Origin: Ascoidea asiatica JCM 7603
Lineage: Eukaryota > Fungi > Ascomycota
DNA: 64,000 nucleotides
NCBI GenBank assembly: GCA_001600695.1
Contig: BCKQ01000013.1
Coordinates: 188,045-252,044 of the forward strand
Reading direction: 5' to 3'
Translations under genes and position numbers: made by a program
Part shown: one piece after another, positions 8,438 to 54,582 of the stretch
How the letters are laid out: every line of letters starts with the position of its first letter
Numbering within the stretch: position 1 is the stretch's first letter
The notes under the pieces: generated by a model
Seen by the model: the letters and a program-made list of their open reading frames with translations, nothing else
Database searches by the model: none
What the model was told of the DNA's origin: nothing

Positions 8438-8558
8438 AGACCCGCACTGTTGGTAAGCCAAGAGCACCCACAAAACTGGTCTCGACAAGAAGTACCGCAA
8501 TTATGGATTCAAAATACAGACCCCAAAATCAAAGTATAAACCCCGTTTCAGGGGTCTG
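8438..8558 (+). promoter_or_regulatory. Four copies of the CC-N8-GGT(CTC) motif in the APL5/OXR1 divergent promoter
   Basis: AGACCC-gcactgtt-GGTAAG (8438), GCACCC-acaaaact-GGTCTC (8464), AGTACC-gcaattat-GGATTC (8491), CCCC-gtttcagg-GGTCTG (8541). Confidence 0.75.
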
Positions 8559-11545: not shown

Positions 11546-11752
11546 TTGAAATCATCAGATTTTATCACCATAAACACCATAAGCATCACCATTATCATCA
11601 TCATCAAGACCAACACTGATTCCATTTCTACTTGTAAATTATCTCTTTTATAAGCCATAAGAAATTAGAAATAAACCTTTATTCACTTTCCAATTTCCAC
11701 TTTCCCACACAGCAATAAAAACTGTTAACAGCAAAATAAACAATTAAAAAGA

Positions 11753-11801
11753 ACACCCGCAAAACTGGTCTCGTGTCTAATTATTCCATTGTTGTGGGTC
11801 T
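11753..11801 (+). promoter_or_regulatory. Two CC-N8-GG motif copies upstream of KXD1
   Basis: ACACCC-gcaaaact-GGTCTC (11753-11772); TCC-attgttgt-GGGTCT (11785-11801). Confidence 0.7.
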
Positions 11802-15816: not shown

Positions 15817-18406
15817 TGTTGTGAAATTAAAGATGAATTTTAAGAAACTATGAACAAAAAAAGGTTAAATAAAATAAAGGAAATTAAATCAGAAATAAAT
15901 TCTAAATTAAAATATTTGATGATAAGTTAAAATAATATAATATATAATGACAAGATAATATGAAAATATAATATAGTGAAAAATTTCTAGGAATTTTAAT
16001 GAAACTTATATAAATAAATATTATATCTAAGTTGTTATGTAATTGTGTAATTGAAGTAATAAGTAATAATTAATGAGTTAAGAGTGTTTGAGTAATTGAA
16101 TACTCAAATATTTGAATAAAAAGACTTCGTATAAAAGAAAGATTATTCTATAAGTTTTTTTAATTGAAAAGCTGCTCTTATCAAGTGCTATTTTAACAAG
16201 AAACAAATGTCAGACAGATAAATAATTTAAAACGATGATTATGAGTGAGGTAATTAAATTCAAATTGAATTTCTTTATCCAATTATTGAACGACAAGTTG
16301 ATAAATAGGTAGACCAATTGATTTTGAGAACCGAGTGAATATTTAAAGGTTTGAGTAAAAAAATAGAATGTCCTCCTTGAAGAGCTTTAGTTTGATTTTT
16401 GATTGAATGATTATAAATTTGTTATTGGGAAAATGTGAGAATACTTCTTATAAGAAAAAATGGAATATCACAATCAGTTACTAATATTAGTACTTTTTTT
16501 GTAATGAGTTGTAATATTTGAGTAAATGTTGATGATATAAGAATATTATTGATGTTATTGGAATTATTGAAATATAGAGAAAATTTACCAATGTTCCATA
16601 GAAATGAAATGAAATTTGAATTCGAATGGTTGATTTGAATTTAAATATGATTTTACCACTAAGTTTACTGGCTCAGTAAATAAGATTATTTAGATAATTT
16701 GAGTATCAAGAATGAAATATTAAATAGTAATTATATAATTTAACCTAAAGTGAAAATTAAATACGAATAGAAGTTAAATAGAAATAAATAAGGAGAAGTA
16801 GAATCAAGTGGAAAAAAAAAAAAAAAAAAAGTAAAATAGAAGTGAATAAATGTTTTCAAATGTGGATTTTTAAAATTATTTATATATAAAATTCTTTATA
16901 TCAGAGTAATTTAAAGTAAATCAGTATTTATATTACAATAATATTGTGAGAATATTGTGAGAGTTACTTTTATGAAGTCAGCAGTACATTGAATGACTTT
17001 GGATTTGATTAACGAAATTCTCTTTGTTTTTTTTAAAAATCTCAAAAAATCAAAGTACAAGGAAAAATGGAATAGAAAAAAGGGTAAAAAAAATTGAATT
17101 AGTTAATTCATAATGAAATTCTTCTCGAAATATTTCTTTTGATCTTTGAATAATATTGTAGTGATTAGTGAGATTGTAAATTGATATTAAATATGTTAAA
17201 AAAAGAGCTCGTATCAAACATAAAATTAATCAATGAAATAACTGATTACTGTCGTAGTTTTAGTGAATTAATTAATAATTTTATGTACGATTACAATAAT
17301 CAATAATTAATAAAGTAACAAGTTATGATGAAATTGAGAAAATTAAAGGTGAGAATTATAATATTGATGTGAATTGTGTAAATTGAGAATTATTTTGTAC
17401 GAATGTTTTGATAAATTTATAAAATAAATATTGTAACATTACATTAAATAAATTTTGAGATTAAGTTGAGATAATAATTATCTTTCTTATTGATTAAATG
17501 GTATGGTTTACGATACGAATCGGGGATTTTTTTATTATACTTGTACTGTACAATGAATTAAAACTGAATTGAAAGTGAATTAAAAGTGAATTTGAAGAGT
17601 TAATAAAGTGACATGATTGAATAATTTTTACAAAATTTAAGAAAATAATAGTATTAGTTTGAATAATCTTATTCATCTTAGGTCAATTAATATAATTTAT
17701 AAGTAATTATAAATATTTTTATTTATTGAAAGTACGACAAAAAATTTAATTTAAAAAAAATCAATTATAGAATATATAATCTTCATAGAAATAAATTATG
17801 AACTTTATAATTTATATTTCTTATTGAAGATATCCTTAATACAATACACAATAAGTGAATTCAAATGAAACCTTGGGTATGGTAGTAATTGTGATTTAAA
17901 ATGATAATATGAAACAACTTATTATAGAAATTAATAAGATTGAGAGTAAAGTATTATTGTAATGAAATTCATATCATAAGATTTTTTTTTTTGCTCAATA
18001 ATCTTATCTTTAGAAAGAGAATCAAATTGATATTTTTTTTTGAACTAAACTAATAAATTCCTTTTTTCAAATGCTTGTAAATTTGTAATATATTCTTCAA
18101 TTGCAAAATAAAAAATTTATATGTTTTAATTGAGGATTTTCAAAGATCAAAGTTCAGGCCGGTGGAGGAGCGCCCAATTACGTAATAAAAACAGGGCCAA
18201 ACTTCAACGTGTGTGCATTATTTTACAGTTTATCACAGAGCGTGACTGTGCAGTGCTGATACTAAAAGTAGTTGCAAGCGGCGGTGGAACATATGTGTGT
18301 TTAGGCACTAAGTTCTGCAGCTAAAATGCATAGACTATGTTCCAAAAACACTGGCTGAAAGCAAGGTCACTGTATTTTGGTGAGGCCGGATGCGGTAGAG
18401 AAAGTT

Positions 18407-18423
18407 ACCGGAAATTTTCCGGT
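18407..18423. promoter_or_regulatory. 17-bp palindrome ACCGGAAA-T-TTTCCGGT, possible Zn2Cys6 dimer site
   Basis: Perfect 8-bp inverted arms containing CGG triplets, inside GC island 18140-18520. Confidence 0.4.
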
Positions 18424-20147
18424 GTGTGTTGAGGTAAGAGAATAACGTTTTCTTAACCACAAAAACGGTCAGCCCACTGTACATAGACTAACTTAAAAGT
18501 ACATGCTCGTATCGACATATATGGATATTTTCAGTTGTGAGTATTTTCATATTAATTTTATAAATATCAATCAATATTTCGCTTGATTTTAATCAAGGAA
18601 ATAAATCAATTAGGTTTGTTACGTTTTTTAGGTTTGTTTGTTGACAAAGGTTGAGAATTTCCTTGAAAGTATCACAAGCATTTTTTTTTTTTTTTTTAAA
18701 TTGGCTTGTTTTTATTAGAAATTTTAAAAGAAGCATGAAAGTTAAGAAAATTAAAAAAGTTAAGAAAGTTAAGAAAGTTAAGTAAGAGAAAATAGCCGAT
18801 TTGATTAAGATATGAGGTTTTAATCTCTTGGGATAACCTGAAATTGATATTTATTCAGTTTTGTAGCCGGCCGGGAGAGATTCATACGTCATAGATTTCA
18901 TTTCATTTGATTTCTTCTTTTTTAAAAAAAATAAAAATTGTAAGAATTCAAACACTTGATTAACAATCGGCGTTTCAGAGACTCGTTTAAGATAAGATTA
19001 TTTTCTGAGATAAAAGATAAAATAATAAAATAAACAAAATGATATTTATTAATATTAGACTCTCGTTTTCAATACGTGTTGGGTTCAAATTTATCCGATT
19101 TACTTGAAGAATCCTTCTTTATCAGACTAAAATCAGCTCCTAAAACGGAGAGGTTACTTTTGAAGATTTTGATAAGCTTATTCATTTGATTATTTTAAAA
19201 AATGATAAGTCATTAATAAGTTCATTACGTATGACAGTCCATTAGCTTCAACTATTGATATGTTCATCACTTGCTTTTTCAATACCAAATACTAATTTTC
19301 GTTTTCTCTTTCCAAATTGCACTTTTTCTAGAACTTACTTTATCACAATAATCAACTTCAACGTTGTGAGATTCCTACAGTAGTTATCTCAAATACCTTT
19401 TTTTCTTTCACACTTGAACCTTTTGAATCTCCATGAATTCAAAAAACCAACAAAGCTAACGACCCTGATATTTTTACAAATATCGGTTTTGTTTTTGCTG
19501 CTTGCGATTCGGCCCAAGAAATAAGATCAGTGTGATCTTTCCATTACCATCCGCACGGGTCCGCAACGTGCTCATCTCCCATGTTTTAGACTGCCACAGC
19601 CGCTGTCTCGCTGGAATGTGCTGTTTCAGAATGCTGGAAGCGCGGAGACATGCTGCTTTTCACGATTTTTACGATTTTCCGTATTTACCCGTGTTTTTCC
19701 GTTTAGTCCAGCCTAAAGTAATCAACCTGCGCCACATCCACTCCACTGTTCCCCACTGCCCCTCGCCTGCACCTGCAGCGGTCACTTTTTGTCCCATTCA
19801 AAAGCCGTTAATCCGCGCTAATCCGCGCTGGCTTGTTCGGTGCTTGGCCGAGACGACCAAAAACTTTCCGGGGTTTTTTTTTCCTGCCTGCCAGCCGCCA
19901 ACGCGTCTAGCAATTATTTTTTTCAACTACTGCTGCTACCGACGCCGTTTTCACGGGTCTCCTTTTTGATATATTCAATTATAAATTAGTCGAGGTTTAA
20001 TTTCAAGAAAGTATATAAAGATCAAAATATTAATATATTTATCTATTTATCTATTTATCTATTTATCTATTTATCTATTGATTGTATTACAATAATAATT
20101 GAAAATATAATTGATAATCTCAATATTATTAACAAAAATAAAAAAAA

Positions 20148-21203
20148 ATGTTTTGGTTTTCATCTTTAAATATAACTCCAATTGAAAATTTAGAAAAAAT
20201 TATAGAATTTTCATATACAAATGATTCATATTTTATTTCTGAAAAAGATTTAATTAAAAAAAATGATTCAATTTCAAATAATAATTTATTAAATTATGTA
20301 AATTTATTTAATTATCCTATTTTCAATACAATTTTTCAATCAAAAAAGATTTTAATTGTTAAAAAACCTGAAAATGATAATGAAAATGATAATGAAAACA
20401 ATAATAAAGAATATTTAAAACCAGAATTAACTCCAAAAGTATTGAAGAAATTAATTAATGATAATGAAATTGGAGATGCAATTGAAATTGATGATGAAAT
20501 TGATGATGAAATTGATGATGAAATTAAAATTGATCAAAATAAATATTTTATTGAAATTAATGGTGAAAAAATAGATCCAGTTGAATATATTTTTAATCCA
20601 GAAAAATTTAATTATTTATTAATTTCAAATAATTTAAATAATAATTTAATTAAAAAAAAATTAAAAAAATTTATAGATTTAATTGAAGAAAAAAATAAAA
20701 TTATAAAAAATTTAAAAATTGAATCAAATAAGAAATTTAAAATGAAATTTAAAATAAAATTTAATAAGGATTCTGAAATTATTCAAAATGAGCAAAATAT
20801 CAAAATAAATTCAAATAAATTAATCTCATTCAATGAAGAAGTCAAAGTTAATACAAAAATTTCATCAATTTCATCAATTTCATCAATTTCATCAATTTCA
20901 TCATTTTCTAATTTCTTATCTATAAATTTCACGAAATTAATAACTAAAATTGATTTACATCATAAAAATAATAATGATAATTTAATTCAAAATAAAGAAA
21001 AAATTACCTCAATCGAAAATTGCAAAATCAAAGGTAAAGATAAAAGTAAAGATAAAAGTAAAGATAAAAGTAAAGACAAAAGCAAGACTCTTCAGTTGTT
21101 AAATACTCAAAAAGATTTATCAAATTTAAATAAACCTTTACCTCCACTTCCAAGTAATTTCAAAATCTTTAAAAATTATATCAATTTTTTCTTTCAGTAT
21201 TAA
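20148..21203 (+). CDS. Hypothetical protein with C-terminal NKPLPPLP (SH3-ligand-like) motif
   Basis: 351-aa ORF with host-like codon usage, TATATAAA at ~20013 and an A-rich start context; no domain recognised. Confidence 0.65.
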   Translation: MFWFSSLNITPIENLEKIIEFSYTNDSYFISEKDLIKKNDSISNNNLLNYVNLFNYPIFNTIFQSKKILIVKKPENDNENDNENNNKEYLKPELTPKVLKKLINDNEIGDAIEIDDEIDDEIDDEIKIDQNKYFIEINGEKIDPVEYIFNPEKFNYLLISNNLNNNLIKKKLKKFIDLIEEKNKIIKNLKIESNKKFKMKFKIKFNKDSEIIQNEQNIKINSNKLISFNEEVKVNTKISSISSISSISSISSFSNFLSINFTKLITKIDLHHKNNNDNLIQNKEKITSIENCKIKGKDKSKDKSKDKSKDKSKTLQLLNTQKDLSNLNKPLPPLPSNFKIFKNYINFFFQY

Positions 21204-21504: not shown

Positions 21505-21723
21505 AAGAGAACCCGCGAAGTTGGTCTCACTCCTAGAATAACCGTGATCATGGTCTCATAGACAAGTACCGCTATTATGGTCTCACCAACAAGTTCCATG
21601 ATATTGGTCTCGTGAAGAAGTACCATGCTATTGGTCTCATGAAGAAGTACCATGCTATTGGTCTCATTTATAAAAGTACCCTGTTGTTGGTCTCAAGCAA
21701 AAGGTTTCCACCATAACGGTAGA
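21505..21723 (+). repeat. Tandem array of 8 units (27-29 bp) of AAGTACC-N8-GGTCTC with variable spacers
   Basis: GGTCTC at 21523, 21552, 21579, 21606, 21633, 21660 and 21689, plus a degenerate GGTAGA at 21718; each is preceded by [A/C/T]CC exactly 8 bp upstream. Confidence 0.95.
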
Positions 21724-21728
21724 GAAAG

Positions 21729-21803: not shown

Positions 21804-21857
21804 ACGCGTTCGGCGCTTGACCAGTCACGTGTCCTATACAAAAGATCCAAAACGCGT
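21804..21857. promoter_or_regulatory. Two MCB elements (ACGCGT) and a Cbf1-type E-box upstream of PDS5
   Basis: ACGCGT at 21804 and 21852, GTCACGTG at ~21824; cohesin genes are typical MBF (G1/S) targets. Confidence 0.75.
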
Positions 21858-28641: not shown

Positions 28642-28665
28642 AAGAAGTACCGTGTTTCTGGTCTC
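28642..28665 (+). promoter_or_regulatory. Single consensus motif copy
   Basis: AAGAAGTACC-gtgtttct-GGTCTC. Confidence 0.75.
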
Positions 28666-28915
28666 TTTTTTGAAGTTTCACAATTTCACAATTTTCGATA
28701 ATAAACAATGAAATAAATGAAATAAATGAAATAAACAATGAAATAGATGAAATAAATAGAGGATATTTCAATATTATAATAGAGAATAGTTTAATTTAGA
28801 TTAAATAATTCATTGAAGAATTGAAAATCATTTCATTATATAGTGTATATGCTTCATGATAAAAAACAAGATAAGAAAAAGAAATAAAAATAAAGAAAAT
28901 TTGAGAAAAAATGAA

Positions 28916-31607: not shown

Positions 31608-31631
31608 AAGAAGACCCGTGAAAGTGGTCTC
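31608..31631 (+). promoter_or_regulatory. Single consensus motif copy
   Basis: AAGAAGACCC-gtgaaagt-GGTCTC. Confidence 0.75.
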
Positions 31632-31796
31632 GTTCCGGTTTCGGATTTTATATTATATTATATTGTATTATATTGTATTATATTATATTATATATTATAT
31701 TATTATATTCCATTGAAGAGTCAATCTACAATTTATGAATTAGAATATTAAAAATGAAAAATATTAATTAAAGAATATATATATATAAATATTATA

Positions 31797-41590: not shown

Positions 41591-41640
41591 AAGAAGCACC
41601 AGGTTCATGGTCTCTCAGTCGGATCCGCAGAGCTGGTGTA
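41591..41640 (+). promoter_or_regulatory. Two motif copies in the ORM / 41933-ORF divergent promoter
   Basis: AAGAAGCACC-aggttcat-GGTCTC and GGATCC-gcagagct-GGTGTA, 26 bp apart. Confidence 0.7.
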
Positions 41641-54407: not shown

Positions 54408-54582
54408 AGAAGACCCGACATTATGGGGTTACACACGTCACATGATAAGAAATGCCATGTGATTAAGAGCTGACAAGTTAATGGTCTTGTAGGTGTCATG
54501 TGATAATGGCTACCAAGTTAATGGTCTTATTTATGTCACATGATTGGAACATCCGTTAAAATGGCTTTGCTTATGTCATGCC
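54408..54582 (+). repeat. 40-bp-period composite array: E-box-like G[T/C]CA[C/T][A/G]TGAT plus the CC-N8-GGT motif
   Basis: E-box-like words at 54437, 54454, 54495, 54535 and 54575 (partial); ATGGTCTT/ATGGCTTT at 54481, 54521 and 54561; AGAAGACCC-gacattat-GGG at 54408. Confidence 0.85.

Follow-up and report, generated by a model that had tools for sequence, protein, structure and literature searches.

A polar 24-bp promoter element, single and in head-to-tail arrays, as a putative general regulatory factor site in Ascoidea asiatica

Introduction

Upstream of the PDS5 gene of Ascoidea asiatica lies a head-to-tail array of short units that share fixed bases around a variable 8-bp core, which raises the question of what kind of element is repeated there and what would bind it. 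The original prediction, made from the window alone (the whole stretch of 64,000 nucleotides analysed here), had offered two readings, a cooperative loading platform for a protein multimer or the remains of transposon subterminal repeats. The wider interest lies in promoter architecture. Yeast lineages differ in the protein that opens their promoters, which draws attention to the way in which a general regulatory factor (GRF) originates together with its hundreds of sites. GRF repertoires are lineage-specific in yeasts (PMC2897762).

Materials and methods

The window lies on contig C13, and the genome searched comprised 20.3 Mb in 71 contigs. An array was defined as at least three exact GGTCTC hexamers. 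The site matrix was derived from 57 sites, and results for the whole genome are given as counts. Position relative to genes was evaluated at 18 placed loci, namely six in the window, the ten other arrays and two near the RAP1 gene on contig C8; three sites in short pieces at contig starts were left out. Translations used the standard table, and CUG is read differently in the Ascoidea clade.

Results

Structure and setting of the array upstream of PDS5

The array occupies an 823-bp gap with a 351-aa ORF on one side and PDS5 on the other, and consists of eight units, seven intact and the last one decayed, that follow each other with a period of 27-29 bp, 330-520 bp upstream of PDS5 (Table 1). 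The periods of 29, 27, 27, 27, 27, 29 and 29 bp, the coordinates and all eight 8-bp cores of the original prediction were re-derived unchanged, and GGTCTC was indeed present in seven of the eight units (units 1-7). Unit 8 stands at the right period, 29 bp after unit 7, with a matrix score below threshold. When the 823-bp intergenic region was simulated under a first-order Markov model, at least one strict unit occurred in 0.16% of trials, and seven were observed. Units 4-6 are 67-89% alike and represent a younger expansion of recent duplicates, and the remaining units are near background in their mutual similarity. The earlier description of conserved arms with variable cores stands as far as the fixed positions are concerned, which are kept, and fails for units 5 and 6, which are near-identical through recent duplication.

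Two MCB-type elements and a Cbf1-type E-box lie downstream of the array; the function of MCB-type elements is taken from the established knowledge of MBF. The GC content of the window is 21.6%, and its proteins are closest to those of Ascoidea rubescens (57% identity for ORM and 56% for PDS5). Elsewhere in the window, a 4.3-kb divergent gap (window:15817-20147) holds no convincing ORF, carries GC-rich islands at ~18150-18500 and ~19480-19960, and gave no Rfam, tRNA or telomere-template match. A 540-aa acidic protein encoded at window:14194-15816 on the minus strand has a motif resembling a histidine phosphotransfer (Ypd1-type) domain, with no Pfam match at 1e-3.

Several other identities of the array were considered and rejected. 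For a structured non-coding RNA there was no Rfam or tRNA match, and the folding z score, calculated for the plus strand only, was -0.54. An interstitial telomeric repeat is contradicted by the best match of the telomere unit to the array, which reached 11 of 17 positions and was equal to that of shuffles. A point centromere is contradicted by the presence of two arrays each on contigs C1 and C13, and no CCG-containing element was found between the E-box and the ATG.

An abundant promoter element

The array upstream of PDS5 represents a common site at its extreme, because the genome carries about 700 copies, most of them single; that the unit is a genome-wide promoter element had been overlooked in the original prediction. 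The pattern CC-N7-TGGTCTC occurs 700 times, compared with 21 occurrences of a reversed control pattern. The GGTCTC hexamer alone shows no enrichment genome-wide (2238 vs 2413), and the upstream CC and T accompany 31% of all 2238 hexamers. An A at position -7 is present in 544 of the 700 strict sites. From left to right, the matrix shows a degenerate, purine-rich side, CC without variation, a core that is almost free, and TGGTCTC, mostly with a purine after it. Between CC and GG, a spacer of 8 predominates (19 cases vs at most one at other lengths, except 9, which arises from CCC runs). The sequence defines a site of 24 bp with three predicted fixed contact points, A(-7), CC and TGGTCTC. It is polar since no perfect palindrome exists: GAGACC-N8-GGTCTC occurs zero times in the genome, and the two arms are not the mirror images they had been taken for. 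A preference for one strand was also discarded, as all strict sites of the window are on the plus strand yet the genome is balanced, with 357 forward and 343 reverse sites.

All 18 placed loci are intergenic and lie within 1 kb of a start codon, in comparison with an ORF fraction of 64% in the window, and the sites at these loci face the gene in some cases and face away from it in others. Of the 700 sites, 26 have a Cbf1-type box in the next 30 bp downstream, where about 4 would be expected by a rough estimate from window densities. Within the window (Table 1), the previously noted 27-bp pair at 8478-8505 is real, though its second unit is degenerate (score 21.5). In the 26-bp pair at 41609-41635, the second unit stays under the matrix threshold, which leaves that pair in doubt.

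Table 1 Copies of the element and neighbouring features in the window
Feature	Position	Strand	Setting
Intact unit and degenerate unit 27 bp on	8461..8511	+	Divergent promoter of adaptin and TLDc genes
Single unit	11750..11773	+	Divergent promoter
Degenerate unit	19940..19963	-	190 bp upstream of 351-aa ORF
Upstream ORF, 351 aa, no Pfam match	20148..21203	+	Ends 300 bp before array
Seven intact head-to-tail units, A-N6-CC-N7-TGGTCTC-R	21506..21695	+	Starts at 21506, 21535, 21562, 21589, 21616, 21643, 21672
Decayed unit 8	21701..21724	+	A(-7), CC and GGT kept; CTC lost
MCB-type element ACGCGT	21804..21809	not assigned	Downstream of array
Cbf1-type E-box TCACGTG	21825..21831	not assigned	Downstream of array
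Second MCB-type element	21852..21857	not assigned	Downstream of array
PDS5 gene, 1533 aa	22027..26628	+	Served by array promoter
Single unit, intergenic	28643..28666	+	920 bp upstream of next minus-strand ATG
Single unit, intergenic	31609..31632	+	950 bp upstream of MFS transporter ATG
Single unit	41592..41615	+	Divergent promoter of ORM gene
Weak unit amid four Cbf1-type boxes	54506..54529	+	Exportin-5 promoter

In the literature searched, no published description of the motif was found, and the site is apparently undescribed. Its sequence fits no Reb1, Mcm1, Tbf1 or Cbf1 site, and the Abf1 motif RTCRY-N5-ACG is absent from the window. For the ABF1 gene itself, the genome gave no PF04684 match, a weak test in which the controls were also silent.

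Arrays, spacing and selection

The suggested check for further arrays brought the total to 11, of four to seven units each, the one upstream of PDS5 being the longest. The genes adjoining them share no common function, and the identified neighbours include PGK1 (a six-unit array), an RTC4-domain gene, HSM3, a zinc-cluster factor, PTA1 and PDS5. In arrays found by GGTCTC alone, CC and A(-7) are each present in 45 of 47 units, and the fixed positions match those of the genome-wide site (Spearman 0.58, searched columns excluded). At the free positions, identity outside contig C13 is 0.374 within arrays and 0.364 between them (p 0.17). With the fixed positions kept and the free positions mostly at background, duplication would thus build or refresh the arrays and selection retain the fixed positions only. 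This agrees with the earlier suggestion of selection on protein-binding positions over neutral minisatellite decay.

The two arrays of contig C13, which may share a common origin, are the most alike pair (0.516 vs a median of 0.432), and their units can be aligned one to one. Another shift fits better than the in-register one, and 185 comparisons would be expected to give a top score of about this size. The sister of the PDS5 array has six units and lies on the opposite strand, 43 kb before the window (L013:1480-1640).

Among 51 same-strand pairs with periods of 18-48 bp, 40 fall at 27-29 bp and come from 20 separate clusters; no pair has a period of 18-26 bp, and inverted pairs amount to only 5 + 3. 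As 27-29 bp is just over the length of the 24-bp site and does not correspond to whole helical turns, the spacing suggests close packing of neighbours instead of same-face phasing. Longer periods (35-38 and 43-48 bp) provide few cases for helical phasing. In pairs with a period of 45-48 bp (C2:1321967, C4:262305, C7:28468), a Cbf1-type box is often found between both units. The original prediction of a cooperative multimer platform is consistent with the head-to-tail order and the fixed spacing, and cooperativity itself would follow from the spacing only; the spacing peak could also arise, without cooperativity, from duplication and a need for whole sites.

A metagenome scan for triple arrays yielded 120 loci, none of them below 35% GC and half with identical cores, which are ordinary tandem repeats.

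Conservation in relatives

In A. rubescens, a single strict site stands in the PGK1 promoter and faces the same way as the six-unit array of A. asiatica. The promoter of the orthologue of the C8 RAP1 gene carries one as well, likewise in the orientation seen in A. asiatica and, as there, beside E-boxes. The strict site is absent from the PDS5 promoter and from two ORM promoters of A. rubescens. Two of five orthologous regions would carry the site by chance with a probability of ~1e-4; the boundary of the RAP1-paralogue promoter was set after the site had been seen, and a wider one alters this value little. The other 104 kb of A. rubescens contain no strict site compared with 3.6 expected at A. 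asiatica density (P 0.03), which suggests that the site is rarer there. At PDS5, the upstream gene differs between the two species, and the A. rubescens promoter has two MCB-type elements, as in A. asiatica.

Further afield, Saccharomycopsis crataegensis has no strict site in 66 kb vs 2.3 expected at A. asiatica density, a weak test, and three PGK1 loci of further yeasts have none either. PGK1 promoters of two yeasts (L049:9791-9816 and L050:7556-7581) contain a look-alike ending in GGGCCC, with the same left side and spacer as the site, 200 bp before the ATG.

Discussion

A putative general regulatory factor site

The unit recurs about 700 times, is intergenic and near a start codon at all 18 placed loci, is polar, keeps a set spacing in arrays, and is present at two orthologous promoters of A. 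rubescens and absent from those of PDS5 and ORM; these are direct observations on the genomes. The best explanation is that a single sequence-specific promoter protein, serving as a GRF in this lineage, binds the unit, a reading to which we assign a probability of roughly 0.75. Such a protein would bind as a polar unit and, as Abf1, Reb1 and Rap1 do, would keep promoters free of nucleosomes. Tandem duplication of a site would create an array, which would be retained only where the copies pack at 27-29 bp, possibly in head-to-tail contact. At PDS5, the seven copies would cover ~190-200 bp, more than one nucleosome, and could leave open DNA upstream of the MCB-type and Cbf1-type elements. Perhaps this array also stops read-through from the upstream gene. 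We infer binding, nucleosome exclusion and cooperativity from the pattern of the sites. Against the reading stand the PDS5 and ORM promoters of A. rubescens, which lack the site, its apparent scarcity in the other A. rubescens DNA and the absence of a common function among the genes beside arrays.

In S. cerevisiae, Reb1 and Rap1 can halt transcription as roadblocks, and six of the 11 arrays lie directly after the 3' end of the upstream gene, as would suit a site whose main task is to terminate transcription in this way or to form a boundary between neighbouring genes. We nevertheless regard this as very unlikely, since six of 11 does not exceed the share expected for tandem regions and the other five, together with several single sites, are located in divergent promoters where there is nothing to terminate. 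A role of the unit as a replication-origin element, recognised by ORC or a helper, is hardly probable. One site per 29 kb is close to the density of yeast origins, the site is long and polar with spaced contact points, and some yeasts have GC-rich promoter origins; against this, the sites cluster in promoters beside Cbf1 boxes, few pairs are inverted, G or C occupies the fixed positions and the density is apparently far lower in A. rubescens.

Transposase binding sites often form direct arrays, and the binder could be a domesticated transposase, yet the flanks of the 11 arrays have only low-complexity matches in common, no transposase was found among the identified array neighbours, and no terminal inverted repeat surrounds the PDS5 array among the longest ones listed. 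With ~700 isolated sites and conservation at two orthologous promoters in addition, the proposed derivation from subterminal repeats of DNA transposons or from MITEs is largely refuted and retains very little probability. Two more readings can be considered refuted, that of a neutral minisatellite and that of a loxP/FRT-type recombinase target with two arms and an 8-bp core. The recent duplication of units 4-6 would suit the former and the length of the core the latter. However, the fixed positions follow the genome-wide site, true tandem repeats that fit the same pattern in the metagenome scan show near-identical cores, and a tyrosine-recombinase site is at odds with arms that are not inverted copies, the absence of any perfect palindrome and the degenerate left side.

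A candidate binder

The genome contains two RAP1 genes (L027:1368-4310 and L028:3179-5299). Of these, the copy on C2 is canonical. In the C8 copy, no BRCT domain was detectable, the C-terminal domain is weak and the linker is changed; among close matches, this copy is common only to A. rubescens. The promoter of the C8 copy (L027:970-1060) contains repeated modules of site plus E-box with a period of ~37 bp, which might point to self-regulation. As a tentative and on balance unlikely proposal, this divergent paralogue could be the binder of the unit, re-specified to two GG steps on opposite strands. In the C8 protein, as in its A. rubescens orthologue, the Myb1 helix is retained, and Phe and Lys occupy the Myb2 equivalents of Asn401 and Arg404, which are base-reading residues of Rap1 Myb1 (PMC7192608). 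Lys at this Myb2 position was found in one of 78 relatives, namely the A. rubescens orthologue. PGK1 is a classic Rap1 target, and in both Ascoidea species the site is present at PGK1 and in the paralogue's own promoter. A strict pattern of little power showed no enrichment of canonical Rap1 sites (2 vs 2). A precedent for Rap1 paralogues of distinct specificity exists in H. polymorpha (PMC6510891).

The geometry of the site argues against this assignment. The two half-sites that Rap1 reads are direct, 8 bp apart and on the same strand (PMC4416457), and the GG steps of the unit are on opposite strands and 10 bp apart. Alternatively, the changed Myb2 could suit the telomere repeat, which six contigs carry at their start (L030, L032, L033, L037, L042 and L043) as a 17-bp unit (C-strand CATCCAACATCAACTGT) with GATGT as its 5' half-site. 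Compared with C. albicans, the distance between the putative Rap1 half-sites of this repeat is one base shorter. A full history would be consistent with these observations, and we consider it speculative and rather improbable as a whole. In it, one of the two RAP1 copies produced by duplication in Ascoidea would have acquired a different Myb2 helix and linker, gained a polar 24-bp site with GG steps on opposite strands, retained its own promoter and PGK1 as targets, and spread in A. asiatica to ~700 promoters as a new GRF that also loads head-to-tail on 27-29-bp arrays.

Relation to known sites

The PDS5 array by itself matters little, being lineage-specific and one of eleven. The interest of the system lies in a site that is long, sharply defined, abundant in A. 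asiatica and seemingly rarer in A. rubescens, where it is conserved at two promoters. The packing distance is set by its natural arrays, and one candidate protein can be named.

Like the CArG box of Mcm1 (CC-N6-GG), the unit has CC and GG flanking an often A/T-rich core; unlike it, the core is 8 bp instead of 6, the site is polar and the TCTC tail is obligatory. The Tbf1-type motif of A. rubescens ribosomal-protein promoters is likewise a promoter motif in the same genus (PMC6173580), but its matrix reads YAGGGCT and is unrelated to the unit. With respect to the candidate binder, the closest parallel is Hansenula polymorpha, where HpRap1A and HpRap1B are encoded by two RAP1 genes in one genome and have diverged DNA-binding domains (PMC6510891). 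Both Hp proteins bind direct half-sites of the GGTGY type, however, whereas the geometry of the A. asiatica site is not Rap1-like and the C8 paralogue is a putative binder.

The site differs from known GRF sites in having no sequence match among them, in its greater length of 24 bp and in its head-to-tail arrays of 4-7 units at 27-29 bp. It resembles the Abf1 site in being bipartite with a free core. In common with yeast GRF sites in general (Abf1, Reb1, Rap1, Cbf1, Rsc3, and Sap1 of S. pombe), it occurs hundreds of times in both orientations, in promoters at the placed loci, with unrelated target genes, Cbf1 boxes nearby and a lineage-restricted use (PMC2897762).
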